Shown: positions 5,293-61,100, numbered from the stretch's first letter. The stretch is DNA of 64,000 nucleotides from Haliotis rufescens (GCF_023055435.1 NW_025963924.1:6014001-6078000); one strand, 5' to 3'. Notes: generated from the letters alone by a model not told the origin. Program-made: numbers and translations.

Positions 5293-8200
5293 TTAGGAAC
5301 ATTTGCAGGCACGCAGTTTTGCGTCAAAGATGGTACCGTTGCACACGTCAGTGTAGACCAGTCGCTGATTAACGCATACAACGTAGTGGCCAGACATTGG
5401 TCGATTTGCGTAGGGGTTAAGGCCGTCGGGGCGGTTCCTGCAGCTGGGGCTGTGGATGTAACAGGGAGGCCCACAGTCCTTTCCCCCAAGACACGCGTAC
5501 CGGGCATACTCGCCTGGAAACAGACATATTTCAGATCCGTTAATGTGTCATTTGAAACCCAACCCATAACACCAACATCGTAAACTAGGCGGCAAAAGAA
5601 AGTATAGGTCGAGTTCGAGGATCGATAGAAAAATTAACAAGAAGAGGTTTTGTTGTGAATTCTAATATACTACACACAAAAATTATTGGAACACCGAAAT
5701 ATACTGTTATAAAAAAGGAACATTTAATGACATGTGTTCGTATCATTACAATTGTGCATTAGCAGATTATCAAGCTTCAAAACAAAAACATTTACAGGTA
5801 ACTGTCATTGAAAAGCACACACGAACAATTCGAATAAGAAATTGGGGGTAAAAAATGGAAATCACAATGTCAATAGCGAGTGTGTCCTCCACGTTGATTG
5901 ATGCATTCGGTGCATCTTCGCCTCATGGATCTTGCAAGGGTGCGAAGGGTAGCCTGTGGAATCGCCTGCCATTCCATTTGGAGCCACTGAACCAGGGCCT
6001 GAAAAGCTGGTGCAACTCAAAGATTGTCCCTGACACGTCGTCCCAGAACATCCCAAAGATGCTCAATTGGAGCCAAATCCGGTGACTATGCTGGCCACTG
6101 CATCACAGTCACATTGTTCTGTTGCATGAAGTCTCTAACGACTCTAGCCCTATGTGGTCTGGCATTGTCATTTTGCAGGATTGCTCCTGGACCAATGTTG
6201 TTCAACTGTGGTAGGACAAGAGGGCGCAAAATCTCGTCACGATACCTCACTCCATTCAAATTGTTTTGAACAAGATAGAGAGGTGTTCGGTGATGCAAAC
6301 TGAAGCCTCCCCATACCATCACAGAGCCACCGCAAAACTGTTTCTTTCTCGTACAGTGGCATCCTCATAACGTTCGCCAGGACGTCTCATAACCATTACC
6401 CTTCCATCATTATGCTCAAGACAGAAACGGGACTCGTCATGTGAAGAGAACTCTGGACCATTGTTGATTATCCCATCTCAAATGTGCCCTGGCCCAGGCA
6501 AGTCTTGCAGCTCGGTGATGAGGACGAAGATGAGGAGGTACAGCTGGACGACGTGACCTTAAATGAGCAGCTCTGAGGCGGTTCCTGATGGTCGATACGC
6601 TTACGTTGGTGTGTGTTGCTTGTCGGAGTTGCAGTCTCAAAGCACTGGCTGTTGTGAACCGGTTCCGTAGGCTTGCAGCACAACGTATCGGTCATCTGCC
6701 CTAGATGTTACTCTGGGTCTACCAGAACGCGGTCTGTCCTGCACTCTCCCTGTTGTCTGGAACCGTTCCCTCAGTCTGTGAATGACAGACAGTGACACTT
6801 GAAGATGACAGGCAACATTCCTTATGGATGCATCATCTTGTAGTCACGCTATGGCCCTACTCCTGTCGTGAATGCTTAACGGTCTTCGCTGGGGCATGTT
6901 TAAGGAAATGTGTAACTTCACAGTGTCTGAAGCTTCTTAATAAAGAAAAGTTGCCACCAACTGCATGGGAATTCTGACTTTCACGTGCACTAGGTTGTTG
7001 TGTTTTGGCGTTTGAATCTGACATGGCGAGGGAGTCCTTCTGCACCCAAGCTTTTTCCTGTTTTAACATTTAATCAATTTGACCAAATTCTTTAAAAAAT
7101 TAAGCACTTGCAAAAATGCATGACTCAACACGTCATTTAAAGTGCCCTCAGTGCACACAAAAAGTTGCATTTACTGAAGTTCATAAATGATCAAGCCACG
7201 TTAAGTTTTATACATGGCTATGAAATTTAGGGGTGTTCCCATTTTTTTTGTGTGTAGTATATAATCTAGGGAGGGTTACAAATGATTGATCAACTATACA
7301 GTTTGAATGAAATTGTGCAATCACAGGTAATGTAAGCTCAAGGTAAACAATTGTGGGGTAAGAAATTTCATTTTCAAAAGTTGTCTGAAATGTCACCCAA
7401 AAATTGGCAGACACACTAAAAGTTCATTGTCGACACAGTTGCCTTCAATAGCGTGTATGACGTCCAGCCGCCTCAATGCATGCTGTAATACGCCGCCTCA
7501 TCGATGACGTCAGTCTTCTGATGACGTGGACTGGAATCCGTTGCCACTCGTCTCTCAGGGCCTGCTGCAATTCTTGTCTGTTGACGGGAGGCTGATGGCG
7601 CGCTCTAATCTGTCTGTCAAGATGGTCCCACAGATGTTCAATAGGATTCATATCGGGTGAGGGGGCAGGCCAGGGCAAAACGTCAACGTTCTGCTGGTTT
7701 ACTGCCCAGGTCAAAACGTCAACGTTCTGCTGGTTTAGAAAGTTCGGAGTCAGTCGTGCAGTATGGGGCCTGGCATTGTCATGTTGAAACAATGTCCCCT
7801 GCTGTTGGTTTTGTAACAATGGAAGCACAACTGGCTGCGACACTTGGTCTCTGTAATGCACAGCGTTCGGGTTTCCCTGCATAATCACCAAAACAGTCTT
7901 CCGATCTCCACAATACCGCCCCACACCGAATGGATGGACCTCTCGAAAACACGCCGGAGCCAAACGTTCCCCTCTGCGTCGATAAACTCGTTGTCTGGCG
8001 ACATTTCGAAACACGTTAAACCGACTTTTATCAGTAAACAGCACTCGACGCCAATTTCTCGCTTGCCAGCGTCAAACCTGCCTCGCCCATCGCAGTCTCA
8101 GGCGTCGATGTTGAGCAGTCAGTACCACTCCTCGGAAAGGACGATACGCTCGGATTCCAGCAGCACGAAGTCGTCGTAGTACTGTATTTTGGCTTATCGG

Positions 8201-11200
8201 ATGCCCCAACACTGTTGCTGCCGTCGCCGTTACGAATCTGTTTCGCAGGTGAATCAGCCGTATCTGACCGTCTTCCAGTGGGGGGCGGTCGGGTAGCCTA
8301 GTGGTTAAAGCGTTCGCTCGTCACGCTGAAGACCCGGGTTCGATTCCCGACATGGGTACAATGTGTGAAGCCCATTTCTGGTGTCCCCCGCCGTGATATT
8401 GCTGGAATATTGCTAAAAGCGGCTCAAAACCATACTCACTCATTCACTCTTCCAGTGGTGTTGTCACTCGGGTCGTCCGGTTCTAGGCCTGTCCTGTGTC
8501 CTCCCTGTCTGCCTGTACCGTTGACTCAGCCTGGCTACTGTCAATGGTGTACAACCAAACCTTCTAGCAATTTGGACCTATGTTGCCCCCATTTCGGCCA
8601 TACCGATGGCTCTCTCTCTCTGCTCCTGTGACAGTCGTGGCATTTCCTTTTTGTGCTTTCATCACGTGTGGTTATACCCTGCAGACGAACGCATATACAG
8701 CTAACATGCACGTGCAGTTTATGCCACAGGCGGGAAACCTTTTTAACCATTTTTTTGTCACCGCACGAGCGCTGTCAAAGGTGCCTCGTTCGGGTGAGGC
8801 CTTTTTTTGGTACCTGTTCCTAGGCAGTCATATTCCCAATACCCACTTTCCACTAGTAATCGCTGTTTTTAGGAAAATTACAAATTGCCAACCTTTACTT
8901 TCTTTTGCCGCTTAGTTTATATATGACCCTCTGAATATTCAAAACAGCGTTCCGATCGGTTTAAAATCGCAAACTTAGCGAATCAATCGTATATATAACA
9001 GTCACCTAATTTGATTTGATTTGATTATATCAACCATATATTAGCATGGCAGACATGTCCTTAATAATGATACTGAAATGTACACAAAAAAGTGTTTAAA
9101 TACTATTTGTTCACAGTGTCCATGAAAAAAAAAGATTCTGTTGTAAAAAGCCCATTTAGGCAAGGAAAAGACAAAACGACAGATGCGATTCTTAACGGGT
9201 GGACATTGATCATGACCTGTGGCTTGCTTCGTTGGTTGATATAGCGATCAGTGTATTTGATAGAAACTTGGCAAATCTGTCAGTCACATATTGAAGGGGT
9301 GCCTTTTGATATTTGGGGATTTTTCGAATTTTTATTTTTTTTAAATCTTTATGAAAAGAAGTTGGACAAAGACTCCATTGGGGATGGGGTTCGTTTCCGG
9401 GCAGAATTATTCGAAAACCATTCAGTATATTTGATCGAAACTTGAAAGATATATCAGATATATATGCTGAAGTGGTGCCTTTTGCTATTTTGTAATTTTA
9501 AAAATTTGTATTTTTGCCAAATTTAGGAATGTTTCAAAATTTAATTTTTCCGTGTATCCATGGACACAAGTAAGACTTTGCTGAAATGGAGGTTTCCATG
9601 GCAAGAAGTTTGACTTTGACTACATCTTTAAAAACTAATGGTATTCTTCCTTGAAACTATGCACACATATGACCAGTTTGTCATCAAGTGCCTTTTGCTA
9701 TTTGTTGGAATATAATTTTTTTTCATTTCCCTGGCAACAACTTTGACAAGCATAGTCGCCGTTCACGGCAGTATTTTCAAAATTCCTAAATAGCAAAAGG
9801 CACCAGTTTAGTATATGCCTGGTAGACATACCAAGTTTTGTAAGAGGTATTTAACAGTTTTTGAGTTACGCTCCAGAAATTAACACCACCCTTATAGAAC
9901 TTGTTGCCATGGAAACGTAAAAAATAAAAAAATCTAAACTTCCTAAATAGCAATACTCACCAGTTCAGCATGAGTCTGATTGATATGCAAAGTTTCGTAG
10001 CGAAATATTTAACGGTTTCTGAGTTATGAACCGGAAACTAGTTAGGGACGCACGCACACACGCACGGACGAGACCTAGTGGCGTGTACCATGCTTAATGT
10101 TATTCCCTCGCTTCCATGATCTAAGGGGCATAACTCTCATGCCTCATTACACCAAGCATACCGCTAGAATACACATCGCATTGCGTTATACTCATGTGCT
10201 CACATGTGAACACTACACCTGGGTACTTACACTTCCCCAGGGGCTCTGTTCTACTGCCACACGTGACCATGCTGTAGTGCTCACATCTCTGTGTATCAGG
10301 GTTGTACAGCTCCGGGAAGGGACATTCCTGGCGGTTCTTCTCCCAGGGTCTGCCATGTATAGTCATGGCAGGTGCGCTACAGTTGTAGTACTGGGCACAC
10401 TCAGTGAGGTGGGGAATCAGCGTCTCCGTCGTTGTCTTGCAAATGGGGTTGACGTCGACGTCGCTTTTGGGTGCAATCAAAGCTGACGCTGGAATCAGTG
10501 TGAAGTTACAGGTTTATTACTTGTTTGCGAGTGAGGACTCTTCATCCCTTGTTACTAGTGACGCCAAACACTCTTCACCCACCTCTATCCCCCTCTCTCT
10601 CTCCCTCACCGACCCTTTCTCCACCCTAACCTTTTACCCCTTGGGAACAACGTTCTGAATCTACCCGATCCCCACACTAACCTCTCTTACACTGCACATC
10701 ACATCCACCTATTCTCTCACATCCACCGACCCGTGAAGATTCCGGGGTAGAATAGGTCTTCAGCAACCCATGCTTGCCACAAAGGTGGCTATGCTTGTCG
10801 TAAAAGGCGACTAACAGGATCGGGTGGTCAGGCTCGCTGACTTGGTTGATGCATGTCATTGATCCCAATTGCGTGGATCGATGCTCATGATATTAATCAC
10901 TGGATTGTCTTGTCCAGACTCGATTATTTACAGACCGCCGTCATATAGCTGGAATATTGCTGAGTGCGGCGTTAAACAACAAACCAACCAATCAGTCAAT
11001 CTCACCTCCACCGACCAACTCTCCTCACCAAATCCATCTCTCAACCTACCCTTTCGTATTTCCGCCGGGAAGGGGTAGCCCGGTGATTAAAGCATTCGCT
11101 CTTCACACTGAAGGCCCGGGTTCTAGTCCCCCGCCCTGATATTACTGGAATATTACTGAAGGCGATGTGTAATCACACTCAGTCAGTCACTCACTCACTC

Positions 11201-11358
11201 ACTCACTTACCTACCTCCGCAGACTAACGATCCTCAATATGTCCTTTACCTCCACCCAAGTACAACACAGCATCATTAAAAAGACAAGCCTGCTCACATG
11301 ATTCCAGGGCGATCAGCAACACCATCAGCAAGCACAACACGCGACACTCACACATCAT
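5293..11358 (-). CDS. Gene A: secreted tandem chitin-binding-domain (CBM14/peritrophin-A, Pif/BMSP-like module) protein, 179 aa; join(11358-11298, 10488-10231, 5513-5293)
   Basis: Exon 1 MMCECRVLCLLMVLLIALES (hydrophobic signal-like) ends at T|GTGAGC. Exon 2 starts after TTCCAG and encodes C-x13-C-x5-C-x18-C-x12-C-x7-C, ending T|GTAAGT. Exon 3 starts after TTTCCAG: (C)EYARYACLGGKDCGPPCYIHSPSCRNRPDGLNPYANRPMSGHYVVCVNQRLVYTDVCNGTIFDAKLRACKCS*. 61+258+221 nt is in frame. ATTAAA at 5255-5250. Intron 2 is expanded by nested Tc1 elements. Confidence 0.85.
5668..7259 (-). mobile_element. Second Tc1-like transposon nested inside the first
   Basis: TIRs TACTACACACAAAAA..GGAACACC at both ends with TA duplication. 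Fragmented transposase (VWGGF, LQNDNARPH, WPA) ~5870-6900. Confidence 0.9.
8281..8447 (+). mobile_element. tRNA-derived SINE (family B) inside the Tc1 transposase gene
   Basis: Full-length, TSD TCTTCCAGTGG. Other copies at 17695-17870, 18106-18270, 30524-30700; degenerate at 11070-11205, 23980-24112, 51668-51800. Confidence 0.9.
9140..10075. mobile_element. Non-autonomous Helitron/Helentron-like (HINE-type) element with internal sub-repeats in both orientations
   Basis: Repeated ~170-nt units containing CCATGGCAAC / AAAAGGCACC and a GGAC-type microsatellite; homologous to 22280-22950. Confidence 0.45.
10728..10998 (+). mobile_element. SINE family A, full length, intron 1 of gene A (duplicate 23637-23908)
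   Basis: TSD CTCAC(A/C)TCCACCGAC; empty site in gene F at ~51612. Confidence 0.9.
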
Positions 11359-12117
11359 GGGGCTGTTGATGAGATCCGAACCGTCTACAAGAAAGCTAAT
11401 GCATAAACATGTTGGAGCTGATCAGTAAACGAAATTTCGGGTGTTGTATGTTAAACAGGTTGGTGTAACTTAAAGAGCGATCCGGATATTTTGATATAAG
11501 AAATATTGATATTTTGAATGACATGATAATGACTGTTTGGAAAGTGTTTTAAAAGTACAAGTTTGGATATGACTCCAATCACTTCCTGTTTCCATAATGT
11601 CCAAATGTCCCAGTATGTGAGTCAGCTACTTCAAATTCGGCAGCACCTGTCTATGGTCTTGCTTGTGTAGAGTCCTACAGATAAAGGTCAGCCATATAGA
11701 ATGTGTATTCCTTGTAGACCTGAAGTTAAAACGGTGAAAGCAAACGTATTTATTAAATATAATTATACTGGTATGTTTTATCTAACTAATATTCCACTAA
11801 TAGTTAGATTAAAATAGGTATCTCACGATAACTCCAAACTACAAAAGTACAGCTTTAATACGGCTAAAAGTGACGGAAATGTTTCTTCGGTATTGGCTCG
11901 TCACCTCAAGTTGGCTTTGTTGACTATAAATAGAACACAAACGAGTTTCGTATATATTTAAGGATCCGGATTCAGTGTGTGCCCAGTTATGTTTGTTGGT
12001 ATTATGGGCAGGAAAATAATCAACAGTGTCCCTCTCACTTTTGTGTTCAGTAAAAATAATGAAGAAATAATTTATTATCTTTATGCAGCATTATACTTAA
12101 AATGAATGTAAGCTTAC

Positions 12118-14205: not shown

Positions 14206-15084
14206 CACTTATTTTCTGTGATTCATTCATATCATCGTCACCGCTATTTTGTCTTTCACACCCAATGGAATCTGTTTCGTCACATAATCGAGACTGATTA
14301 CTCTCTGGCCATGAAGTTATTTGTATATATATATATGTGTATAATTATGTATAAAATGTCATGTAGATTGCTCCACCTTACGACCAATTGGTAGGTTTAG
14401 TCTTGTAAACGCAGTTACCCCTGATGATATATTTGCCCTATGGGGATATATAGGTGCGGACAAATGCATACATTGTTGATATACTCTTTAATTTCAGTTG
14501 ACATTGTGATTTTAAAAATAACATATATTTTATGAACACCTGCAGGCACGCAAGTTAACGTCAAAGACAGGTGTCCCCGTTCCGTTATCGTGGCACTCGC
14601 CAGTGTAGACCAGTCGCTGATTAACACATACAACGTAGAAAGAAGAGCCGGGGCGATTTTCGTAGGCGTTGAGGCCGTCAGGAAGGAACCTGCAGGTTGG
14701 GTTGTTGACGAAACACGGTGGTCCACAGTTGACTGACCCAAGACACGCGTACCGGGCATACTCGCCTGGAAACAGACATACCACAGATCCACCTAAAGTT
14801 GTCATTTGAAACCGAACACTGACGAACAACAAGTGCATGTCCGTTTGATTTCAAAGGGAAAAAATAGCGGGATCAAGTTTATAAAACAGTCCTCTAATTT
14901 GATTTGACTCAAATGTGTTCACTTTTTCCAATAGAAATGAATCAACGCATCTTCGTGTGTATGGATAAAATATGGCAACTACTGTGAAGCGCGTTCAGCC
15001 ATTGGCCAGTAATTAAGGATTGCTGTAGTTAATAACTGTTAAAAGTTATATATATATTCATGCTCTTGGTTTCCATCGAAACGA

Positions 15085-15362: not shown

Positions 15363-15689
15363 TATCGAAACGAAGAGGAAGCCTGGGCACTCACATTTTC
15401 CCAGGGGCTCCATTCTGTTACCGCACTGGACCATGCTGTAGTGCTCACATCTCTGTGTTCCAGGGTTGTACAACTGCGGGTAGGGACATTCCTGTAAGTT
15501 CTTCCCCAAGATGATGCGGTTAAATTTCATGGCTGGGGCGCTACAATTGTAGTACTGGGCACACTTTGTGGGGTGGGGTATTAGCGTCTCCGTCGTCGTG
15601 TTGCAAATGGGGTTCACGTCGCTTGTCGGTGCAATCAAGCTGATACTGGAATCAGTGTGAAGTGGCAGGTTGAAACTAGTTACCACAAA

Positions 15690-15895: not shown

Positions 15896-16284
15896 GTCTT
15901 TAAAACAGAGAATCTTGCTCACATGATTCCAGGGCGACCAGCAGCACAATCAGGAAGTACAACATTCGACACTCACACATCATGGGGCTGCAGAAGAGAT
16001 CCAATCAGATGCCCCCCTGGATTTTTTTTTTATAGAAAACAGTTTTATTTGAATCAACTTGGGGACAAGTGATACTTGTGCAAATATTTGCCCTCCCTGT
16101 AAAAAAATGTTAACTGCGGCCTAATATGCGATCATCTGGTTTGGATAAAGCGAAATTTCACTTGTATGTCCAACAGATTGGTGTTATTCAGAGCTCGATC
16201 TGTATATTTTAATATGATAACAAATTCGTATTGTGTAGAACATGTAAATGGCCGTTTGGAATGTGTTTTAAAAGTACAGGTTTG

Positions 16285-20267: not shown

Positions 20268-23200
20268 TTACGAACACCTGCAGGCGCGCAATTTGGCGTC
20301 AAAAATAGGTGCTCCCGTTCCGTAATCGTGGCACACGCCAGTGTAGACCAGTCGCTGATTAACGCACACCACGTAGTTGGGAGTGTTGAGGCGCCATTCG
20401 TAGACGTTGAGGCCGTCGGAGAGGTTCCTGCAGGTGGGATTGTGAACGTGGCATGGTATCCCACAGTACTTTCCCCCAGGACATGCGTGCTGTTCATATT
20501 CGCCTGGAAACAAACATATTTCAGATCCCGGTAAATTTGTAATTTGAATCCGAAAGCACACCAACAACATCGTATGACCCTCTTAATATTCAAATGACAA
20601 ATTTTGCAGGATCAATTTTATTTAACAGTCCTCTAATTTGAAAACAGTAGTTTGGATGATTGAACTGTGTAACATTGTTTCTGTTGAGATTGGGTAGGGG
20701 ATCAACGCATTGTATTTGGACAGTGATTAGTTGTCAGGAATGTTGTACTATTTAATGTAAACAGTTGTGAGGAAGTTACTATATTCAGATGCTGGTGTGC
20801 TGTGTAAACTGTAGTGAACTGTGATGGAGTGTTACAGAAACATGACTGCATTGTAGAATATTCTATGTTGTGATGACACTGGAAATTTCCAGTAGCTGGT
20901 TAGACCGTACATAAGGGGGCAAGAGCGTGCCTAATTAATGGCCTTGATGTCCACGGTTCTGAAAGAAAATGAATAATGTACAATTGGAACTAAAGACTCA
21001 TGAAAGAACTTGGTATAAGTGACATACGACATTATACCACGTACTAGAATAAGGCCAGTATGTTAAAACCTAAAGACATTTCCATTCCTCTTTTGTATTC
21101 CAAAGCTACATAAACATCCCTACAAAGAGAGATCAAGTGGATGGACACAGGGAACAAATCTGGAACACAACGCAATGCCCCCACACGCATTGTCCATCAC
21201 TACCTAAACAAAAAAGGTGTAAATTTGCCTCGTTGCCTGAACACCTGTAAATGATTAAAGGTTAAAGCTCAATCACCGAAACAACAACAACAACAACAGT
21301 TCCATGGCCAGTACAGGACTTTTCGTTTGTTTGTTTGTTTGTTTGTTGAGCCCAGGAATTCCAGCCTAGTTCGGTAAGGGTGGAAACTGGACTTTTAAAG
21401 TCAGTTAACCCTCTTGCCTCGGGAAGATGTTTACAGCAAGCATTGGTTATTGTTCTTTTGGCCACATATACAAATACACTGTCTGTCTGTCTCTCCATGG
21501 CCAGCATGATCACCGGATCCGAAACAGGTACGTGTCAACAGAATTTAGCAACATGCTTTTGTAAAGGAATTACGCCATAAGGCGGTTGACAACATAAGAA
21601 AGGTGACGTGGTAGAGTGCATTGATGGAGATGCGGAAACACGCATTTATCACCCAGAAACAACATTAGCAGGAACAGCTTCAGTTTTACAACAAGCGTCT
21701 ATTTCCATGATAGGATGAAACCGTCTTTTGGAGCCTATGTGTCTTCAGAACACATGTCCATGTGATTCATTCTGTCGTATTGATATATTTTAATATCAGA
21801 TGGATGACGTAATTGATTAAATCCATGTTGACATCAATATTCGTCTTTGTTTACTTTTACTGACATTCAAACTCAGTGAGAACGTTTTCATCAGGTTCGT
21901 TAAATCAATGTGAAGCAAGATTTGATCCTCCATGAACCGACGTTACATGCTTTGATGTAGGTTATATTGTATACCATTCATAGTTTTACGATTGATATAT
22001 TTTGAATAATAATCTGTTATTACCTATATATGATCACATCAAACGTGTACTCTTTCATTCAGTTGAAATGTACGCTAGCCTGGTGTATGTGGGATAAAAA
22101 CCTATTGCATTCCTGTGAAATAAATGCTTTCAGACATTTGCGGCAAATTTGCCAGTTACTGTAGTTTATTAATGTTAAAGGTATATATGTCCATGCTCTT
22201 TGTTTCTATTGAGAAGAGGGAAGCCAGGTGTAATATTAATGTTTTAAGCAGCTGATGGCCTGTGTCACACTGGATGATGAAACGTGTATAGTCGACGAAG
22301 TCATCTATATCCCCCGCCAATTTAACGCGTTATGGTCCCAAACCAGAGGTAACTGACCCAACATTTCTTAGCCTGTGTCAAAATATCTGCAATGGAAATC
22401 GTAAAATAAACACTTCTAAAACTCCTTAATATCAAATGGCACCAGTTCGGTATGTGCTTTACATATAGACATGCAATGTTTGGCAAGGAAATATTTAACA
22501 ATTTATTTGTTATACTCCATAAGTGAACCCACCCTATATTAAAACTTAAATCCAACTTGTTGCCATGGAAACGTAAAAAAAATAAAAAATTCTAAAAGTG
22601 CTAAATATCAAAAGGAACCAGTTCAGTTTGTGCCTTGCAGACAGGCAAAGTTTTGTAAGAAAGTATTTAACAGATTATGAGTTACGCTCCGGAAACGAAC
22701 ACCACCCTATAGAACCTAAGTCCAACTTGTTGCCATGGAAACGTAAAAAATAAACATTTCTAAAATTCCTAAAGAGCAAAAGGCACCAGTTCAGCATGAG
22801 TCTGATAGATATGCAAAGTTTCGTAGAGAAATCTTTAATGGTTTCTCAGTTATGCTCCGGAAACTATTTCGGGACGCACGCACACACGCACGGACGGACG
22901 GACGGAACCCATTTCTATATCCCCCACCAACTTCGTTGGGCGGGGGATAATAAACGATTGAAGACCTAGTAGCGTGTACCTTGCTTAATGTTATTCACTC
23001 GCTTCCATGACCTAAGGGGCATAACTCTCATGCCTCATTACACCATGCATACCGCTAAAATACATATCGCACTGTGTTATACTCATGTGCTAACATGTGA
23101 ACACTACACCTGGGTACTTACACTTCCCCAGGGGCTCTGTTCTGTTCCCACACGTGACTTTACAGTAGTGCTCACATCTCTGTGTTTCAGGGTTGTACAG

Positions 23201-24263
23201 CTCCGGGAAGGGACATTCCTGTAGGTTTTGTCCTAAAAAGCCGTAACGATGTATTATCATGCCCGGTGCGCTACAGTTGTAGTACTGGGCACACTTAGTA
23301 GGGTGGGGGATCAGTGTCTCCATCGTTGTCTTGCAAATGGGGTTCACGTCGACGTCGCTTGTGGGTGCAATCAAAGCTGATGCTGGAATCAGTGTGAAGT
23401 GACAGGTTTAATACTTGTTTGCGAGTGAGGACTCTTAGGTCCACTTTATCCCTTGTTACTAGTGACGCCAAACACTCTTCACCCACCTCTACCCCTATCT
23501 CCCTCTCTCTCTCCCTCACCGACCCTATCTCAACCCTAACCTTTTACCTCTGGGGAACAACGTTCTCAATCTATCCGATCCCCACTCTAACCTCTCTTAC
23601 ACTGCACATCACATCCACCTATTCTCTCACCTCCAGCGACCCGTGATGATTCCGGGGTAGAATAGGTCTTCAGCAACCAATGCTTGCCGCAAAGGTGGCT
23701 ATGCTTGTCGTAAAAGGCGACTAACAGGATCGGGTGGTCAGGCTCGCTGACTTGGTTGATGCATGTCATTGATCCCAATTGCGTGGATCGATGCTCATGA
23801 TATTAATCACTGGATTGTCTTGTCTAGACTCGATTATTTACAGACCGCCGTCATATAGCTGGAATATTGCTGAGTGCGGCGTTAAACAACAAACCAACCA
23901 ATCAGTCAATCTCACCTCCACCGACCAACTCTCCTCACCAAATCCATCTCTCAACCTACCCTTTCGTATTTCCGCCGGGAAGGGGTAGCCCGGTGATTAA
24001 AGCATTCGCTCTTCACACTGAAGGCCCGGGTTCTAGTACCCGCCCTGATATTACTGGAATATTACTGAAGGCGATGTGTAATCACACTCAGTCAGTCACT
24101 CACTCACTCACTTACCTACCTCCGCAGACTAACGATCCTCAATATTTCCTTTACCTCCACCCAAGTACAACACAGCATCATTAAAAAGAGAAGCCTGCTC
24201 ACATGATTCCAGGGCGATCAGCAACACCATCAGCAAGCACAACACGCGACACTCACACATCAT
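20268..24263 (-). CDS. Gene C: secreted tandem chitin-binding-domain protein, 185 aa; join(24263-24203, 23382-23122, 20503-20268)
   Basis: Same exon architecture and GT-AG sites; 61+261+236 nt, open frame. Exon 2 ...CAQYYNCSAPGMIIHRYGFLGQNLQECPFPELYNPETQRCEHYCKVTCGNRTEPLGK. Exon 3 (C)EYEQHACPGGKYCGIPC...LRACRCS*. ATTAAA ~40 nt after the stop. Confidence 0.88.
22280..22950 (+). mobile_element. Helentron/HINE-like non-autonomous element
   Basis: Subterminal direct repeat CTATATCCCCC(G/A)CCAA, (GGAC)n tract, 3' hairpin ATCCCCC..CCAAC TTC GTTGG..GGGGGAT; collapsed form at ~50920-50992. Confidence 0.5.
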
Positions 24264-27200
24264 GGGGCTGTTGATGAGATCCGAACCGTCTACAAGAAAG
24301 CTAATGCATAAACATGTTGGAGCTGATCAGTAAACGAAATTTCGGGTGTTGTATGTTAAACAGGTTGGTGTAACTTAAAGAGCGATCCGGATATTTTGAT
24401 ATAAGAAATATTGATATTTTGAATGACATGATAATGACTGTTTGGAAAGTGTTTTAAAAGTACAAGTTTGGATATGACTCCAATCACTTCCTGTTTCCAT
24501 AATGTCCAAATGTCCCAGTTTGTGAGTCAGCTACTTCAAATTCGGCAGCACCTGTCTATGGTCTTGCTTGTGTAGACTCCTACAGATAAAGGTCAGCCAT
24601 ATAGAATGTGTATGCCTTGTAGACCTGAAGTTAAAACGGTGAATACAAACGTATTTATTAAATATAATTATACTGGTATGTTTTATCTAACTAATATTCC
24701 ACTAATAGTTAGATTAAAATAGGTATCTCACGATAACTCCAAACTACAAAAGTACAGCTTTAATACGGCTAAAAGTGACGGAAATGTTTCTTCGGTATTG
24801 GCTCGTCACCTCAAGTTGGCTTTGTTGACTATAAATAGAACACAAACGAGTTTCGTATATATTTAAGGATCCGGATTCAGTGTGTGCCCAGTTATGTTTG
24901 TTGGTATTATGGGCAGGAAAATAATCAACAGTGTCCCTCTCACTTTTGTGTTCAGTAAAAATAATGAAGAAATAATTTATTATCTTTATGCAGCATTATA
25001 CTTAAAATGAATGTAAGCTTACCTTCACAGCGCTAGAACTGTTCACGGGCAGGTGCTTGTTGTAGTTACGCTTCAGGCGTCTTAAGTGCAGCGCACGCTG
25101 TCCCTGTAACAGACAGGCGTTATCAGTGTGGAATATGGAATGACCGTTGCGCATTAAAGTCGCTATTCTTCAGCTGACGTGAAGCGTCATTTGCCTACCT
25201 CTTCACTATAGGATTTAAATGTCCATGTATATTTAGATATGGGAAATGCACAAGTGGTTATCTGAGCAGATATGCTTTTTTATTCATTAACTGTTCGCGT
25301 TTTGTGAAGCGCCTTTTGTACAGACACGCAAGGATACACACAGGCACGAACGCACGAAAGCTTCTTAAGTCGAGAGCCGTATATGTGGATGGAACGCGTT
25401 AAGGTGTTGATCCAGGTCTCATGAAGTGTGCATACGTTGTTGTTGTCAAGGTATCACTGACATAAATGTCGAATGCAATTCCCTGTTTTGACTTGTTCCA
25501 AATGTTCCTGTGTTTTTTCAGGTGAACAATTTACCTTTACCTGTATTTGTCGTGGGTGCCACTGGAAGGGCGGGATAACACTCACCTGGCATCATCACTA
25601 TTTTTGTCACTGATGGGTCAAATTTGGAAATGTCCTCCTCATGTCTACCATACAACTTTGCTTTGAAAGCTTTGCTGAGGTCTTGTATGTTGTAACATTG
25701 ATTAAACCACTCATGAGAAAGAATGGCATGACGCTCTTTGAAATATTCACAGAAAGAACATGCCCGAATGTACCTCAAAAGTACTGAAATGTAAACAGTG
25801 AAGGCTGACTATTGGAAAGTTCAAGCCATCCCTCTTGTCATACAGCCTTGTGGAGAGTTTTTTTGTCACCCTGATCTATATGTAGTATAAAACACGTCAG
25901 AGTGTTTGGGGAGTTTCAAAACCGGAATCCAAGGGATAAAAACCGAGTAGCGTCGGCCCCGAGGTTTTATCCCAAGGTTGAGGGTTTTAAATCTCATAAA
26001 AACCTGATGGTAAGTGTTTTATCCCTCTTGACATCCCTCTTGTCATAAAGTATTGTGGATGGTGTTTTGTCAAACTGAATCTCTATGCGTTGATCTAAAG
26101 ATGAAAAAGATTAGGCAGTATCACTTGTCTGCTTTTATTTCTAGCTCAGGTGGGTACATCTGTGGAAGGGAAATGACTATTTCACCATTATTGATCGATT
26201 TTAGACCACTAATATACCTGATGCTTAAGTTCAACTTCTTGGCCAAATTCCCTTTTCCCAATCTGAGCAGACCTTCCTCTTCATGTGCATAGAGAAACAG
26301 ATCAGCAAGATGGGGAGCACAATTGGTGCCCATGGGGATGCCTACCAAATTTTACATAGATGTTATCAATGACTTCATATGTTGTTTCACTCAGTGTACG
26401 TCAGATAACATTTTCTTTTATATTCCATAAATTCTCCCGAACCTCTAACGATAGAGATATAACTATATCAATAGCCACCGCGTATAGTAACAAATGCCCT
26501 TTGAATCAAAGAATAAAAGTTTTCCCTTAGTTTGTCGTGTGAATTACAAGGACAGCTGTTGACAATGGATCGGGCGATCCTGAGGCTTTGACGATTCAGT
26601 ATACCCGTGGAAGATGCCACTGACGTTGTTAATTTAACCCAGACCATGTACATGTTAGGGAAATAGTCCAATGATTTACTAATTTCATCTCTGATTTTTT
26701 TGGAACAAGCAAAATGATGCGGAAGAGGCAGGAGTACTGCTGTGCGGCTTCAGACAACAGACACTTATAATTGATGCGGATGCTACCTGTGGAGCAGAAT
26801 ATGATTCCCCTTCTCGGGAACGCCCGGTGTAATCACTTATTTTCTGGCCCGTGAAGATCCGGGGAAGAATAGGTCTTCAGCAACCTATGCTGGCTGCAAA
26901 AGGCGACTATGCTTGTCGTAAGAGGCGACTAACGGGATCGGGCTCGCTGACTTGGTTGATGCATGTCGTCGATCCCAATTGCGTGGATCGATGCTCATGA
27001 TGTCAATCACTGGATTGTCTGGTCGAGACTCGATTATTTACAGACCGCCGTCATATAGCTGGAATATTGCTGAGTGCAGCGTTAAACAACAAACAAACAA
27101 ACACTTATTTTCTGTGATTCATTCTCACATCGTCACCGCTATTTTGTCTTTCACACCCAATGGAATCTGTTTCGTCATATAATCGAGACTGATTACTCTC

Positions 27201-44385: not shown

Positions 44386-44424
44386 CGTGTTGCAAATATG
44401 AAACACAGCCTCTGTATTATAATA

Positions 44425-48184: not shown

Positions 48185-51100
48185 TTACGAACACCTGCAG
48201 GCGCGCAATTTGGGGTCAAACATAGGCATCCCCATTCCGAAATAGTGGCACTGGCCAATGTAGACCAGTCGTTGATTAACGCACACCACGTAGTAGGTAG
48301 AGTTGAGGCGATCTTCGTAGACGTTGGGGCCGTCGGAGAGGTTCCTGCAGGTGGGGTAGTTAACGGAGCATGGTATCCAACAGCGCATTCCCTCATGGCA
48401 TTTGCCCTTCTCATATTCGCCTGGAAACAAACATATTTCAGATGCCGCTACATTTGTAATTTGAATCCGAAAGCACACCAACAACATTGTATGACCCTCT
48501 TAATATTCAAAGCAACGTTAGTATTCAAATGACAAATTTTGCAGGATTAATTTCATTTAACAGTCCTCTACTTTGGAAAACAGTAGTTTGGATGATGGAA
48601 CTGTATTACATTGTTTCTATTGAGATTGGGTAGGGGATCAATGCATTGTATTTGGACAGTGATAAGTTGTCAGGAATGTTGTACTTTTTAATGCAAGCAG
48701 TTGTGAGGAAGTTACTATATTTATATGCTGGTGTGCTGTGTAAACTGTAGGGAACTGTGATAGAGTGTTACAGAAACATGTAGAATATTCTATGTTGTGA
48801 TGACACTGTGGGAATTTCCAGTAGCTGGTTTGACCATACATAAGGGGACAAGAGCGTGCCTAATTATTTGCCTCGATGTCCACGGTTCTGAAAGAAAATG
48901 AAAAATGTCCAATTGGAACTAAAGACGCATAAAAGAACTTGGTATAAGTGACATACAACATTATACCACGTACTAGTTTAAGGCCAGTATGTTAAAACCT
49001 AAAGACATTTCCATTCCTCTGGATTCCAAAGCTACATAAACATCCCTACAAAGAGAGATCAAGTGGACGGTCCCAGGGAACAAATCTGGAACAGAACGCA
49101 ATGCCCCCACACAACACGCATTCTCTATCACTACCTCGCCTCGTTTTAAATTCGCCTCGTTGCCTGAACACCTGTAAATTTGTTAAAGATTAAAGATCAA
49201 TCACCGAAACAACAACAACAGTTCCATGGCCAGTACAGAACTTTTTGTTTCTTTGGTTGGTTGTTTTTTAACGCCGCATCCAGCAATATTCCAGCTATAT
49301 GACGGTGGTCTGTAAAGAAATCGATTCTTGACCAGATAATCCACTGATTGACATCATTAGCATCGATCCACGCAATTGAGATCGATGACATGCATCAAAC
49401 AAGTCAGTGAGCCTGTCGCCTCTTACGACAAGTCGCCTTTTACAGCAAGCATGGGTTATTGTTCTTTTGGCCACATATATGAATACACTGTCTGTCTGTC
49501 TGCCCATGGCCAGCATGATCATCGGATCCGAAACAGGTACGTGTCAACAGAATTCAGCAACATGCTTTTGTAAAGGAATTACGGAGAATCCTGTATGGCG
49601 TCATAAGGCCATTCACGATGTTTTGTTGAACGGAATCCTGAACAAGTCGAGCAATATGAGGCTAGGCGCTGTCATGTTGAAAGGTAATGCCTGGGACATG
49701 ACGACGCAAAAACGGTAGAACAACAGGGCCGATGATCTCGTCACGGTGGCGCTGTCCATTGAGATTTCCCTTTACCACTATCAAACTGGTCCTCTGTCTT
49801 GCTGTAATCCCATCCCATACCAAAACGCTGCCGCCCGAACCGATCTTCTTCCATGACACAATGATTCACCTTCACGTTCACCTCGACGTCGGTACACTCG
49901 AATCCGTCCATCGCTGTGGCTGAGGTGAAAACAAGACTCGTCAGTGAATATAACTTGTCCCCACTGCATGGCCGTCCAGCGTAGACGCTGTCTGCACCAC
50001 TGTAGACGTGCTTGACGGTGGTTTCCTGTCAAATTGGGACGTCTGGCGGGTCTTCTGGCGACAATCCCTGCACATCTGAGGCGGCGACGTATGGTTTGTG
50101 AAGATATTCGTCGAAGGCCAGGGATGCTTCTTGAAGTCACTGTTGCTGGCTGGAATTTTGTAGGTGTGCTGTTCGAATCCAGTTGTCTTGTCCATTATTG
50201 GTTACACGTGGCCTGCCACTTCTAGGATGGTCTCTGACTGCATTCGTATGTTGCCAACGTTGCCATAAACACCAAATGGTTTTTCTGTGGACGTTAAATT
50301 GTCTTGCAACATTACGTTGACTCGATCCTGCTTCAAGCATACCAATGGCTCGCAGACGCTCATTGTCGGACAGGCGTGGCATTTCGTAATGTTGAATAAT
50401 TGCATAATTTTGTTGTTTTTCTGAGTGGTTGTTGTCAGCACGATCCTAAACAATGCACATGGAAATCCCGTTAACGCACATGTTTTTATACCCATTCTTG
50501 AGTAGTGAAATACATGGGGCTTGCATAAAAGACATCTTTTGCATGGAATGCGTGCTTTAATGTAGCAGTTGCGTTTTAGTGGCTTGATTCCATACACGTC
50601 CTACAATATTGAAAACCAAGCTTCACTTGTTTGAAAAATACACTAAAATATTGGTGTCACAGGAACTTTTGTTGTTGAGTATATGATATGATCAAACGTG
50701 TGCACTTTCATTTCGTTTAAATGTACGCTAGCCTGGTGTATGTGAGGAAAAACCTATTGCATTCCTGTGATATAAATACTTTCAGCCATTTGCGGCAAAT
50801 TGGCCAGTTACTGTAGTTGAATGTTGAAGGTATATATGTCCATGCTCTTTGTTTCTATCGAGAAGAGGGAACCCAGATGTAATGTTTCAAGCAGCCGATG
50901 GGCTGTGTCACACTGGATGACAAGTGTTTAGTCGACAAAGTCATCTATATCCCCCGCTACTATATCTACTTCGTTGGGCGGGGTATAATAAACGATTGAC
51001 GACCTAGTGGCGTGCGCCATGCTTAATGTTATTCCCTCGCTTCCCTGACCCAAGGGGCATAACTCTCGTGCCTCATTACACCAAGCATACCGCTAAAATA

Positions 51101-52157
51101 CATATCGCACTGTATTATTCTCATGTGCTAACATGTGAACACGACACCTGGGTACTGGCCAAGAATACTTACACCTCCCCAGAGGCTCTCTTCTGCTGCC
51201 ACACGTGACCATGCTGTAGTGCTCACATCTCTGTGTATCAGGGTTGTACAGCTCCGGGAAGGGACATTCCTGTTGGTTCTGTCCTAAGGTGTAACCCTGC
51301 ATTTTCAGGCCCGGTGCGCTACAGTTGTAGTACTGGGCACACTCAGTTGGGTGGGGGATCAGTGTCTCCGTCGTTGTCTTACAAATGGGGTTCACGTCGA
51401 CGTTGCTTGTGGGTGAAATCAAAGCTGATGCTGGAATCAGTGTGAAGTGACAGGTTAAATACTTGTTTGCGAGTGAAGACTCTTAGGTCCACTTTATCCC
51501 TTGTTACTAGTGACGCCAAACACTCTGCACCCACCTCTGGGGAACAACGTTCTTAATCTACCCCATCAACACTCTAACCTCTCTTACACTGCACATCACA
51601 TCCACCTATTCTCTCACCTCCACCGACCACCTCTCCTCACCAAATCCATCTCTCAACCTACCCTTTTGCAGGGGTAGCCCAGTAGTTAAAGCATTCGCTC
51701 TTCACACTGAAGGCCCGGGCTCGAGTCCCCCGCCCTGATATTACTGGAATATTACTGAAGGCGATGTGAAATCACAGTCAGTCATGATCAGTCACTCACT
51801 TACCTCCGCAGACTAGCGATCCTCAATATCTCCCTTACCTCCACCCAGCACAACACTGACGGTATACAAAACGAACAGTACAACATACACGCATGAAAAC
51901 AAAGCATACTACACACAACAAACACACAATGTAACACTCACATAAAACCAACATCACACAACAGAGAACACATAAAAACGGATCACAACACACCAGAACA
52001 CAACACACACACTATACACAAACATAACGAAAGACACACAGACATACATCACACACATAATATAACGCAACAAATTAAAAAGAGAAGCCTGCTCACATGA
52101 TTCCAGGGCGGCCAGCAGCACCATCAGCAAGCACAACACTCGACACTCACACATCAT
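48185..52157 (-). CDS. Gene F: secreted tandem chitin-binding-domain protein, 184 aa; join(52157-52097, 51430-51173, 48420-48185)
   Basis: Exon 1 MMCECRVLCLLMVLLAALES. Exon 2 is 258 nt. Exon 3 (C)EYEKGKCHEGMRCWIPCSVNYPTC...LRACRCS*. Canonical splice sites, open frame; poly(A) hexamer changed to AGTAAA. Confidence 0.88.
49585..50682 (-). mobile_element. 3'-truncated Tc1-like transposon in intron 2 of gene F
   Basis: MPRLSDNERLRAIGML, GRPRVT, VIFTDES, FQHDSA motifs; absent from the matching intron of gene C. Confidence 0.85.
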
Positions 52158-55100: not shown

Positions 55101-55709
55101 GACTGGGTATTGTCTGCCCTTGAAGTTATTTGTATATATATATATGTGTATATGTATAAACTGCCATGTAGATTGCTCCACCTTACGGCCAAGGGGGTAG
55201 GTTTAGTCTTGTAAACGCAGTTACCCCTGATGATATATTTGCCCTATGGGGATATATAGGTGCCGACAAATGCATACATTGTTGATATACTCTTTAATTT
55301 CAGTTGACATTGTGATTTTAAAAATAACATATATTTTATGAACACCTGCAGGCACGCAAGTTAACGTCAAAGACAGGTGTCCCCGTTCCGTTATCGTGGC
55401 ATTGGCCAGTGTAGACCAGTCGCTGATTAACGCACACAACGTAGAAAGAAGAGCCAGGGCGGTTTTCGTAGGCGTTGAGGCCGTCAGGAAGGAACCTGCA
55501 GGTTGGGTTGTTGACGAAACACGGTGGTCCACAGTTGACTGACCCGAAACACGCGTACCGGGCATACTCGCCTGGAAACAGACATACCACAGATCCACCT
55601 AAAGTTGTCATTTGAAACCGAACACTGACTAACAACAAGTGCGTGTCCGTTTGGTTTCAAATGAAAGAAATAGCGGGATCAAGTTTAAAAAATCAGTTCT
55701 CTAATTTGA

Positions 55710-56976: not shown

Positions 56977-57168
56977 GCAACACAAGGAACAATCATCTAT
57001 TATTGTTATCTGTGAATTATCAACTCAAATGTCTTCACTTTTTCCAATAGAAATGAATCAACGCATCATTGTGTGTATGGACAAAATGTTGCAACTACTG
57101 TGAAGCGCGTTCAGCCATTGGCCAGTAAGTAAGGATTGCTGTAGTTAACAACTGTTAAAAGGTATATA

Positions 57169-57378: not shown

Positions 57379-57804
57379 TATGTATATTCATGTTCTTGGC
57401 TTCTATCGAAACGAAGAGGAAGCCTGGGCACTCACATTTTCCCATGGCTCCATTCTGCTGCCTCACGTGACCATGCTGTAGTGCTCACATCTCTGTGTTC
57501 CAGGGTTGTACAGCTGCGGGTGGGGACATTCCTGTAGGTTCTTCCCCAAGATGATGCGGTTAAATTTCATGGCTGGGGCGCTACAATTGTAGTACTGGGC
57601 ACACTTTGTGGGGTGGGGTATTAGCGTCTCCGTCGTCGTGTTGCAAATGGGGTTCACGTCGCTTGTCGGTGCAATCAATGCTGATACTGGAATCAGTGTG
57701 AAGTGGCAGGTTGAAACTAGTTTGCAAGTGGGAAGTCAACTCCACCCCTCGTTACCGTGCCACCAAACACACTGCATCCTTCTCTCTCCTTGCTCACCTC
57801 TTAC

Positions 57805-57985: not shown

Positions 57986-58066
<81 letters not shown>

Positions 58067-58110: not shown

Positions 58111-61100
58111 TCACCACCTCACCTCACCTCACCTCACCTCACCTCACCTCACCTCACCTCTTACTTCCGCTAAACAGCACAGTGAATCTTAGCCTCTCTT
58201 ACACGATCACCTCACCTCACCTCACCTCACCTCACCTCCGCCGACAAACGATCCTCACCGCATTCTTGCCACCTACCCTCCCTAACCTTTGCCCAACATT
58301 ACACTGAAAACAAACACACAGTAAACACACAAAGACAGCACAACACAAACACACATACTATACACAGGAAACACACATTGCAACACACATACAACACACA
58401 CCAAACATACATCACATTGTACAAGAGAAAACCCCAAAAATAAGCACAGCACATACACACGACCACTACACACCGATACCATAACCACCAAACACATCAC
58501 ATAATAGACACCACAAAAAAACATAGCACAACACAGGCACAGACATACAAGAACACAACACACATATACTTTACACACACACGGAGGCAACACACAACAT
58601 GCCCACACAACACATACATCACGCACAACACAATACAACATCTTTAAAACATTGAATCATGCTCACATGATTCCAGGGCGACCAGCAACAACATCAGGAA
58701 GTACAACACTCGACACTCACACATAATGGGGCTGCAGAAGAGATACAAATCGTCTACAAGAAAACTTATGCATTAAGTCGTATGCGATCATCTGGTTGGA
58801 TAAAACGAAATTTCACTTGTATTTTAAAACGATTGGTGTTACTCAGAGCTAGATCTGTATATTTTAATATAATAACAAATTCGTATTGTGTAGAACATGT
58901 AAATGGTCGTTTGGAATGTGTTTTAAAAGTACAATTTTGATTTGGTTGGTTGGTTTGTTGTTTAACGCTGCACTCAGCAATATTCCAGCTATATGACGGC
59001 GGTCTGTAAATAATCGAGTCTGGACTAGACAATCCAGTGATAAATATCATGAGCATCGATCCACGCAATTGGGATCGATGACATGCATCAACCAAGTCAG
59101 CGAGCCTGACCACCCGATCCCGTTAGTCGCCTTTTACTACAAGCATAGTCGCCTTTTAAGGCAAGCATGGGTTGCTGAAGACCTATTCTATCCCGGAATC
59201 TTCACGGGTCTACAAGTTTGAATATGACTCCAATCACTTCCTGTATCCATAATGATCATAATGTCCTTATGTCTCAGTGTGTCAGTCAGAAACTTCAAAT
59301 TCGGCCACACTCGGTTATCTTGGGTTAAGAAGAAAACAGCTGTCTCCCGTCTTGTCTGTATAGCTCTTCAGACAATGGTCAGCGTAAGTTAAATTCCACT
59401 TCCATTTATTATTTTGTCAATACGTGTAGAACTGAAGCTAAAACTGTAAATATTTATTGAATATACTTGTACTGGCATGCTTTATCTAACTTAAATTCCA
59501 CTTCCATTTGTTATTTTTATGCAGCCTGATTAACATAAATCACAGCTTACCTTATCAACGCTATAACCGATATAGTGCAGGTGCTTGTGGTGTCTTGACT
59601 ATAGGATTAAATGTCATTGTATATTAGATAAGAAAAATGCGCATATTCTTATCTGAACAACAGATGGGTTTTTTATGTGCAAGGATATATTGGGTCTCCC
59701 TGTGCTGTAAAGTCTATTGTACATACATGGACAGACACAGATACGCACAGACGCACGCACGGACACGGTTTTGCCTGCACAAGGCACACAGTCATCACAG
59801 ATCATGAGTTTCATTTGTTCTAAGTAATTCACGATCTTCTCAATGAAACACTGTAACCTATATTTGGGAATGAAGTTATTTTTCTCTTTGTTGTTTATTG
59901 ATGCAATCAGCCAATAATCAGCTACATGGCAAGGAGCATGTAAATGACTGAGTTTGAACCACACAATCAAGTGATATATATTTTGGGGAGGGGGACACGC
60001 AATCAAACGAGTCAAAGAGCCTGACCATCAGATCAAGTTAGTAGCTTCTCACTACCAGCATAACAGTTTGTCTTTTATTGAAATTGAACAGGGCCTGTCT
60101 CATTTCATTTTTATATCATTACCATTTCTTAGTGTGACACAATCAGTATCGTTAACAGCTGATATAATTGACAGCCGTTGTGTACGTCTGGTACGCGTAA
60201 AGGTGTTCATCCACCTGCCGTTATATGCGTCTACGTTGAGCTTATCAAAATCTCTATGAAGACGAGTTAAATGTCTGCGTGTCTGCCCAGTCAATAGATG
60301 AAAGACCCGTGAAGATCCGGGGTAGAATAGGTCTTCAGCAACCCATGCATGCCGTAAAAGGCGACTGTGCTTGTCGTAAGGCCCCTAACGGGATCAGGTG
60401 GTCAGGCTCACTGACTTGGTTGATGCATGTCATCAATCTCAATTGCGCTGATCGATGCTCATGATATTAATCACTGGATTGTCTGGTCGCCGTCATATAG
60501 CTGGAATATTGATGAGTGCGGAGTTAAAAAACAAACAAACCAACCAATCTTATCTTGGAGTCAGGTCAAAAGATGTTAGTACTTAGGAAACATACTGGCT
60601 TGTCGCATTAGTTGATATGTCACTTGTCCCAATTTCTTTCATCAACAAATCATGTAGTGAGGGTAACTTTTTATAGTTATAATATTTCAGGTCTTGTCAG
60701 TGGAAATGGCTACACACTTTTCATGTAGCCAGCTGGCTGGGACAAAATGAGTTTATTACAATTCTGTTACCCCTTTTTTAGTTTTTGCATTCTACTAATG
60801 ATAACATCAAGCACTGACTTAAAACACCATAGTTATTAGTTGTTGCAAGCAATAATCGACCTCCTCAATGAAACACTAGAGTCTATATTTTGGAATAAGC
60901 GGTAACACACGGTTATTTTGTTTAGAACCACATTGTGTCATAATACCTATCATAAAGACTTTTTCTTAATACTTTAATTTTTCTTGTAGAATGGATGAAA
61001 ACACAAACAATCAGTTTGGGTCAGAGTGTAGTGCGTTCGCGTGCCGTTTAAATTTGTAATTTATATATTAAGGATAGGGTGTGTTATTCATTTATCGTAA

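Follow-up and report, generated by a model that had tools for sequence, protein, structure and literature searches.

The 64-kb stretch of Haliotis rufescens DNA analyzed here (GCF_023055435.1, NW_025963924.1:6014001-6078000; the window, with positions counted from its first letter) carries seven co-oriented minus-strand units, genes A to G, which are uncharacterized members of the secreted multi-CBM14 (peritrophin-A) proteins of molluscs. Our preferred reading, held as a whole with moderate confidence, is that they form part of a tandem family, expanded in Haliotis and evolving by birth and death, of secreted two-CBM14 proteins that would bind polysaccharides in the mantle and shell matrix. 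The units were delimited by pattern scans and open-frame extension and occupy positions 5293-58724, from the end of the gene G stop codon (5293) to the ATG of gene A (58724). In loose pattern scans a CBM14-like exon and a Cys-rich terminal exon were each found seven times, in strict alternation, a pattern that is far beyond chance.

Every unit comprises three coding exons, the first encoding the signal peptide, the second a CBM14 and the last a Cys-rich sequence. Exon 1 (58-61 nt) encodes M(M)CECRVL...ALES, ends in phase 1 at a GTGAGC donor and is found upstream of all seven copies. Exon 2 (243-261 nt) is preceded by ttccag as its acceptor and followed by GTAAGT or GTGAGT as its donor, and exon 3 (221-236 nt), also preceded by ttccag, terminates at the stop codon. 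All introns are GT..AG and in phase 1, and intron 2 divides the Cys codon of the 'CEY' motif between T and GC. The first-pass annotation of this DNA had proposed seven three-exon genes with canonical splice sites. The seven units, their motifs, their GT..AG junctions and their coordinates stood, but only B, C, E and G are open when spliced (184, 179, 185 and 179 aa, respectively); likewise, the three exons hold for the coding part, but E and G carry an extra 5' leader exon.

The intact models were compared with public proteins. In H. rufescens RefSeq, there is 100% identity of gene E with LOC124146566 isoform X2 (P0004), of gene C with LOC125383480 (P0155) and of gene G with residues 14-192 of LOC124146569 (P0152), and gene B is 100% identical to residues 62-245 of LOC124146520 (P0157) and 99.5% identical to LOC125383479 (P0002). 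Because the intact models agree residue for residue with RefSeq proteins, our splice models equal the public ones. The four intact genes are already in RefSeq, yet only as 'uncharacterized protein'. When exon 2 of gene G was used as the query, with scoring limited to that exon, 14 'uncharacterized proteins' of 170-185 aa were retrieved from four Haliotis species. Searches with the gene models used single exons or public proteins identical to the models, and joined translations served only for frame checks, alignment, dN/dS (nonsynonymous to synonymous divergence) and the tree. The earlier proposal that the module stands alone as a secreted protein of ~180 aa was borne out by the RefSeq models, by the presence in each unit of its own ATG, signal-peptide exon and stop, by a poly-A signal 37 nt past the stop in six of the seven units, and by a 180-aa H. 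laevigata transcript with mass spectrometry peptides, described below.

The domain encoded by exon 2 (domain 1) matched the whole Pfam CBM_14 profile (PF01607, positions 1-53 of 53) with 30.1-33.0 bits in B, C, E and G, the gathering cut-off being 22.1 bits. Its Cys residues follow, in the sequence, the spacing C-x12-C-x5-C-x15-19-C-x11-C-x7-C. The textbook spacing of CBM14 is C-x(13-20)-C-x(5-6)-C-x(9-19)-C-x(10-14)-C-x(4-14)-C, and only the first gap of domain 1 falls one residue below the range. Judged by profile and spacing, domain 1 is a canonical CBM14, in agreement with the peritrophin-A assignment made initially.

Exon 3 encodes a more unusual domain (domain 2), which Pfam misses in six of the seven window copies. 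Gene G alone exceeded the CBM_14 cut-off (22.6 versus 22.1 bits), and exon 3 of B, C and E gave no CBM_14 match at E <= 10. Domain 2 has nine Cys, four of them in an N-terminal extension, C-EY-x4-C-x5-C-x3-C, and it departs from the canonical six-Cys pattern in that the second Cys is missing and a C-x-C stands at the end; the protein finishes 1-3 residues later. Compared profile to profile (hhalign), domains 1 and 2 showed no significant match (probability 2.9%). Among homologues from other molluscs made of domain 2 alone, 6 of 19 gave a CBM_14 match, with a best E value of 1.3e-7. An AlphaFold model of LOC124146566 X2 (gene E), computed from a 54-sequence family alignment, reached a predicted local distance difference test (pLDDT) score of 86.8, above 90 through exon 3, and a predicted template modeling (pTM) score of 0.72. 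When this model was searched against representative structures (VIA), all eight matches with Z >= 2 were CBM14 folds, tachycitin (Z 4.8) among them. Residues 102/128-185 alone aligned to Der p 23 (Z 5.5, root mean square deviation 1.9 over 48 residues), and residues 102-185 also matched Blo t 12 (Z 4.8) and the CBM14 of CHIT1 (Z 4.5). In a protein atlas the look-alikes of domain 2 fell only in CBM_14 clusters (scores 0.84-0.87), which we take as a lead only, and a single-sequence search of LOC124146566 X2 against PDB sequences gave just a weak match to a chitinase CBM14 (E 2.3). These data suggested that domain 2 is a divergent CBM14, as judged by predicted fold and transitive homology, so that the CBM14 reading of the second domain gained support from the modeled fold (Z up to 5.5) and from the Pfam matches of the stand-alone homologues.

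With canonical CBM14 domains such as those of tachycitin, Avr4, the chitin-binding domain of CHIT1 and squid beak chitin-binding protein 3, the abalone proteins share the six-Cys spacing, the Pfam match and the fold in domain 1, and the fold in domain 2. In contrast, abalone domain 2 is without the canonical second Cys and adds four N-terminal Cys and the terminal C-x-C. In the model, domain 2, preceded by its four-Cys extension, packs against domain 1. The mature proteins contain 15 Cys (16 in E), and since this number is odd there may be room for an intermolecular disulfide.

A profile built from the seven exon-3 peptides retrieved 138 proteins (E <= 1e-3), which belong to bivalves (Sinanodonta, Tegillarca, Pinctada, Crassostrea and Mytilus) and gastropods (Aplysia, Nucella, Lottia and Haliotis). 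CBM_14 was matched in 74 of these 138 proteins, and VWA or Laminin-G in none of them; ten long relatives, scanned singly, contained CBM_14 only. In the long relatives the two domains alternate as a unit, with nine pairs in a 1337-aa Sinanodonta protein and six in a Lottia protein. This distribution bears on the label 'mini-Pif', which the first-pass annotation had given to the family and according to which the two domains would be the excised chitin-binding and chitin-binding-like (CB-like) pair of Pif and BMSP, large proteins of the shell matrix. Such an origin has in its favor that Pif/BMSP are shell-associated, as the abalone family appears to be, and also have CBM_14 followed by CBM_14-like sequences, in their case downstream of VWA (PMC11291548). 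Nevertheless, Pif/BMSP are set apart by their descriptions, which include VWA, Laminin-G, proteolytic processing and an acidic CaCO3-binding half, whereas no VWA was found in the ~180-aa abalone proteins, no Laminin_G match in any relative, and no acidic C-terminal half, the abalone proteins ending right after domain 2. Furthermore, the CB-like motif of the Lottia Pif/BMSP relatives has a Cys-Cys doublet between Cys3 and Cys4 (PMC3374290) that is absent from the abalone module, and neither the homology nor the atlas searches led to a Pif or BMSP protein. A search of the H. rufescens genome for VWA (PF00092) gave at least 150 strong matches, none of them near a CBM14 match, and was uninformative. 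We therefore consider an excised Pif pair highly improbable and abandon the label, although the abalone pair may be distantly homologous to that of Pif/BMSP.

Outside the window, at 6133717-6138166 of the contig, two units ~900 bp apart are annotated as a single 292-aa protein (LOC124146557, P0016), which has no signal peptide and whose second unit carries a TGA in its last exon according to a six-frame search. This locus may represent single-module genes fusing into multi-module proteins.

The link of the module to shell comes from its relatives. The Lottia protein Lotgi1|231869 (LOTGIDRAFT_231869, P0031), in which domain hidden Markov models (HMMs) revealed six alternating pairs of CBM14 and 'CEY' domains, was identified by proteomics as a major acid-soluble shell protein (PMC3374290). 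This secreted protein and its relatives in Patella, bivalves and Nucella have the same two-part module as the abalone proteins. Lotgi1|231869 differs in its length of 1061 aa, with the six modules in two blocks and Pro-rich, extensin-like linkers, whereas in abalone there is one module per gene, with its own signal peptide, and multiplication has produced genes rather than internal repeats. With the Lottia protein as the query, a search sized for ~1000-aa proteins returned only its Patella orthologue. A literature search with the LOC identifiers and LOTGIDRAFT_231869 as written gave no papers; the Lottia protein appears there as Lotgi1|231869.

Closer to the family, the supplementary MaxQuant tables of the H. 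laevigata shell proteome include Haliotis_sp_Tri_137628, a protein of 180 aa and 19.6 kDa from a database ('Tri_') that corresponds to a mantle transcriptome (PMC6003135). Its shell peptides TTTETLIAHPAR (residues 34-45, flanked by DDVNPICK and CAQYYNCS) and DCGAPCHINNPTCR (residues 114-127, flanked by RYACLGGR and NFADGLNV) (PMC6003135) come one from each domain of the family. It was detected with three peptides in the prismatic acid-insoluble fraction (protocol B; 25.6% coverage, 0.054% of intensity-based absolute quantification, iBAQ) and with one peptide in the nacre acid-soluble fraction (protocol C; 0.004% iBAQ) (PMC6003135). The suggestion that the repertoire was undescribed holds in so far as its members are uncharacterized, but the loci are in RefSeq and an orthologue stands, unremarked, in these supplementary tables. 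In a second H. laevigata protein with shell peptides (PMC6003135, supplementary file 1), a signal peptide and one additional CBM14 precede this two-part module, and the protein resembles Aplysia LOC101859542 (P0021); its peptides point to a three-domain relative that is also shell-associated. In H. asinina, ML5H8 is a 10-kDa shell protein with a single CBM14-like domain and an isoelectric point of 10 (PMC2989941). By its description as a shell-matrix protein of abalone whose degenerate peritrophin-A domain keeps four of the six Cys (PMC2989941) it is reminiscent of the family, but with ~10 kDa and one domain it differs from the two-domain proteins of ~180 aa.

The seven genes of the window are part of a larger array. 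A six-frame genome search and subsequent mapping with HMMs over 264 kb of the contig located ~25 minus-strand units with strictly alternating domains 1 and 2 at 5.984-6.233 Mb (~250 kb). Exon models of the whole array reproduced the hand-checked boundaries of exons 2 and 3; their exon-1 picks in GT-rich repeats were unreliable and were not used. One diverged unit on the plus strand (contig 5978816-5980734) lies at the low end of the array, outside the window. A self-comparison revealed a 12.9-kb duplication of [D,E] into [F,G], with 96.9% identity over 5.8 kb, and there is a 26-kb higher-order repeat of [C,B,A]. A 21-bp satellite, GTCTTGTTCTAGACAGTTGCA, with 42- and 63-bp higher-order periods, occupies 33420-37931 (~215 copies) and 61672-62768 (~50 copies), and a 33-bp minisatellite comes after each block (38064-38303 and 62900-63494). 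Both satellite blocks are located immediately 3' of a C-type gene and are hence part of the 26-kb higher-order repeat.

The divergence between copies is concentrated in the coding exons. Exon 3 of E and B differs by 16.1%, versus 4.8% in the aligned flanks (2.6 kb; Fisher p = 1.4e-9), and exon 2 of G and E differs by 13.6%, versus 5.7% in the flanks (p = 7e-4). The coding exons thus diverge about three times faster than introns and flanks, and we regard rapid exon evolution as well supported by these sequence comparisons. In the pair F/D, in contrast, identity is ~99% throughout. Nei-Gojobori dN/dS values were 0.34-1.01 for whole genes and reached 1.53 (B versus E) and 1.23 (B versus C) in exon 3, a ratio above one being by itself not significant at these counts. 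The Cys residues are conserved throughout. Within one gene pair dS differed several-fold between exons, which points to exchange between paralogues. In a tree of 20 Haliotis proteins, the paralogue lineages predate the split of H. rufescens and H. cracherodii, the G lineage is also present in H. rubra and H. asinina, three C-type copies in H. rufescens are recent, and gene B sits on a long branch. The proposal of a birth-and-death family was strengthened by the combination of pseudogenes, recent segmental copies and old paralogue lineages, and the data fit birth-and-death evolution with diversifying selection.

The three genes that do not splice into an open frame, A, D and F, constitute one subtype, characterized by a GTGAGT donor, 'KCECPG' past the exon and an exon 2 of 251 nt versus 252 nt. 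Their frame-breaking 1-bp deletions are independent and lie at three different sites. That of gene A is near the 3' end of exon 2 (GCCCCTGGG to GCCATGGG) and is accompanied by a TGA at the codon of the sixth Cys; a fourth copy of the subtype, A', located outside the window, has the same lesions as A. We take A, D and F to be pseudogenes as assembled. If the lesions were instead assembly errors, all seven copies would be functional. D and F have just one 1-bp deletion each, that of D within a CC dinucleotide, as might be expected from such errors, but the two lesions of A include a substitution and are both common to A', and the deletion of F is outside any homopolymer. Moreover, across the modeled array out-of-frame copies were found only in this subtype, in all four of its copies, and the D/F pair, unlike the intact genes, shows no excess of exon over flank divergence. 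No RefSeq protein of the subtype was returned by the homology search, its sole trace being the chimeric LOC124146520. Taken together, these observations make assembly errors a very unlikely explanation. LOC124146520 (245 aa) joins part of A exon 3 to the leader of gene B (55336-57470 into 52097-52190), and its start ATG arises from a mutation in pseudogene A, CCCCTGGG to CCATGGG. If RNA supports this model, pseudogene A would be transcribed as a 5' leader of B.

According to our preferred reading, each intact gene would give rise to a secreted protein of ~180 aa with a cleavable signal peptide, a canonical CBM14 and a divergent CBM14-fold domain. The mantle epithelium would be the secretor, a role that we infer, and the two CBM14 surfaces, to judge from their fold, would bind chitin or a related polysaccharide in the organic matrix secreted by the mantle, some copies ending up occluded in shell. 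Unequal crossing-over in the phase-1 introns would drive the family, leaving as its signs the 12.9-kb and 26-kb segmental copies and the exon-level mosaics. The A/D/F subtype would have been lost to pseudogenes, and in the surviving copies diversifying selection would act on exposed residues and leave the cysteine scaffold unchanged. Several points weigh against this reading. Chitin binding is predicted from the fold alone, and two proteins with the same fold, Der p 23 and the Eisenia hydrolysis-enhancing protein (EHEP), do not bind chitin (PMC10619976). Tri_137628 is a minor, unremarked shell identification, at 0.004-0.05% iBAQ; in the parts of the source available to us, it is missing from the accepted lists (Tables S2/S3) and the main text (PMC6003135), and its presence in shell could be carry-over from mantle secretions. 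Finally, recognition or conflict proteins show strong diversifying selection more typically than structural matrix proteins do, and the dN/dS ratios do not by themselves establish such selection.

The same observations have led us to weigh functions other than matrix building. In one, the array would be a repertoire for immune or surface defense, whose products would recognize chitin or other glycans in the style of tachycitin and act against fungi, shell-borers or other chitin-bearing or glycan-coated organisms at the mantle and shell surface, their presence in shell being incidental. Exon divergence about three times that of the flanks, a ~25-copy array with pseudogenes and lineage-specific copying, the tachycitin fold match and the low abundance in shell would all agree with such a role; the nearest multi-module relative, in Lottia, is nevertheless a major structural shell protein, and EHEP, with the same fold, is without antimicrobial activity (PMC5271319). 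We consider defense unlikely, although a possibility to be kept in mind.

An alternative that we judge improbable is a dietary counter-defense, in which the proteins would act in digestive fluid by precipitating brown-algal phlorotannins, thereby protecting glycosidases, so that the ligand would not be chitin and the selection would reflect an arms race with algal chemistry. Abalone graze brown algae, and the accelerated exon evolution would also be in line with this idea. The model for it is EHEP of Aplysia kurodai, a secreted digestive-fluid protein with three CBM14 domains that does not bind chitin and that precipitates phlorotannins, so protecting beta-glucosidase (PMC5271319, PMC10619976). 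Like the abalone proteins, EHEP (PDB 8IN3/8IN6) is small, secreted, of gastropod origin and built of CBM14-fold domains alone, and it was the best structural match, as the top hit of both Foldseek (8in3/8in6; E 3e-4 over ~145 columns, template modeling score 0.22-0.24) and VIA (Z 6.0, domain 1). However, with few multi-domain CBM14 structures in existence, any tandem-CBM14 query is expected to have EHEP as its best match, and EHEP has three canonical domains, arranged in a triangle, versus two in abalone. The two have no detectable sequence relation, and the family profile did not match EHEP among PDB sequences even at E <= 10. The distribution of the module also argues against a digestive role, since Aplysia has a separate orthologue of it (LOC101859542), it is present in filter-feeding bivalves and in the carnivore Nucella, and the sole tissue and protein evidence for the family is from mantle and shell. 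A literature search for abalone phlorotannin-binding proteins found nothing relevant. In a broader form of these alternatives, the array would be a fast-diversifying repertoire for secreted ligand recognition rather than a set of structural chitin binders, serving either defense at the mantle and shell surface or phlorotannin binding recruited independently of, and in parallel to, EHEP. We regard this as rather doubtful; if it were true, the evolving binding sites would lie in the variable loop between Cys3 and Cys4 and on the domain 2 surface.

The exons of the seven units are compiled in the table, together with the leader exons of E and G. The latter lie ~240 nt upstream of exon 1, with ATGs at 24500 and 11595. 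In gene E the leader, ATGGAAACAGGAA followed by gtgatt, is spliced to an acceptor that lies upstream of the MMCECR ATG by 26 nt and yields METGNGSDLINSP, as in RefSeq isoform X1; the gene G leader joins an acceptor at the same distance. Splicing of the E and G leaders explains the 13-aa N-terminal extension of some RefSeq isoforms, and that of LOC124146569 is accounted for by the gene G leader. The leader acceptor, ttcttgtag before ACGG, is present in A, B, E and G, and gene C has ttcttgttgacag before a T at this place. Upstream of exon 1 of D (29120-29195) and F (15984-16060), an A-run followed by TCCAGGGGGGCA takes the place of the acceptor; from the sequence, this change may reflect an insertion by which the subtype lost its 5' leader splice site. 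Intron 1 of D (28584-28958) and F (15706-15883) also contains a CA/GT-rich minisatellite with a 97-bp or 86-bp unit, which on the gene strand creates spurious Cys/Val-rich open frames and many ATG...GT candidates that mislead automatic exon-1 finding. Intron 2 of gene E harbors a 168-bp tandem repeat (22388-22864; 2.8 copies, 77% matches).

Table. Exons of the seven two-domain genes in the window.
Feature	Position	Strand	Remarks
Gene A exon 1 (signal peptide)	58667..58724	-	MCECRVLYFLMLLLVALES, then GTGAGC donor, phase 1
Gene A exon 2 (CBM14), putative pseudogene	57436..57686	-	251 nt; TGA at Cys6 codon and 1-bp loss, GAGCCATGGG vs GAGCCCCTGGG
Gene A exon 3 (second domain)	55336..55571	-	236 nt, open by itself, stop at end; 5' part of chimeric LOC124146520
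Gene B exon 1 (signal peptide)	52097..52157	-	
Gene B exon 2 (CBM14)	51173..51430	-	Pfam CBM_14 33.0 bits, profile 1-53
Gene B exon 3 (second domain)	48185..48420	-	intact gene, 184 aa
Gene C exon 1 (signal peptide)	41616..41676	-	
Gene C exon 2 (CBM14)	40697..40939	-	Pfam CBM_14 30.4 bits
Gene C exon 3 (second domain)	38768..39003	-	intact gene, 179 aa
Gene D exon 1 (signal peptide)	29059..29119	-	
Gene D exon 2 (CBM14), putative pseudogene	28281..28531	-	251 nt; 1-bp deletion mid-exon, AACCGC to AACGC
Gene D exon 3 (second domain)	27425..27660	-	
Gene E leader exon 3' end (upstream ATG and GT donor)	24488..24500	-	ATGGAAACAGGAA, then gtgatt
Gene E exon 1 coding part (signal peptide)	24203..24263	-	
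Gene E exon 2 (CBM14)	23122..23382	-	Pfam CBM_14 30.1 bits
Gene E exon 3 (second domain)	20268..20503	-	intact gene, 185 aa
Gene F exon 1 (signal peptide)	15923..15983	-	
Gene F exon 2 (CBM14), putative pseudogene	15395..15645	-	251 nt; 1-bp deletion 9 nt into exon, CAGCATTG to CAGCTTG
Gene F exon 3 (second domain)	14530..14765	-	
Gene G leader exon 3' end	11583..11595	-	same sequence as gene E leader
Gene G exon 1 coding part (signal peptide)	11298..11358	-	
Gene G exon 2 (CBM14)	10231..10488	-	Pfam CBM_14 30.7 bits
Gene G exon 3 (second domain)	5293..5513	-	intact gene, 179 aa; Pfam CBM_14 22.6 vs 22.1 bits

Through this analysis, ~25 abalone loci annotated only as 'uncharacterized protein' are named, read as to their domains and set in their genomic context, and the tempting designation as Pif-like is corrected. 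The second domain of their products is recognized, by its predicted fold, as a CBM14 variant that Pfam largely misses, and the abalone genes are tied to a conserved two-domain module found across molluscs, including a major shell protein of the limpet. The practical value of these results is modest. With a cysteine scaffold that stays constant while the coding exons change at about three times the rate of introns and flanks, the family offers a test case for how fast-evolving genes of the mantle secretome may be shaped by shell construction, defense or diet.

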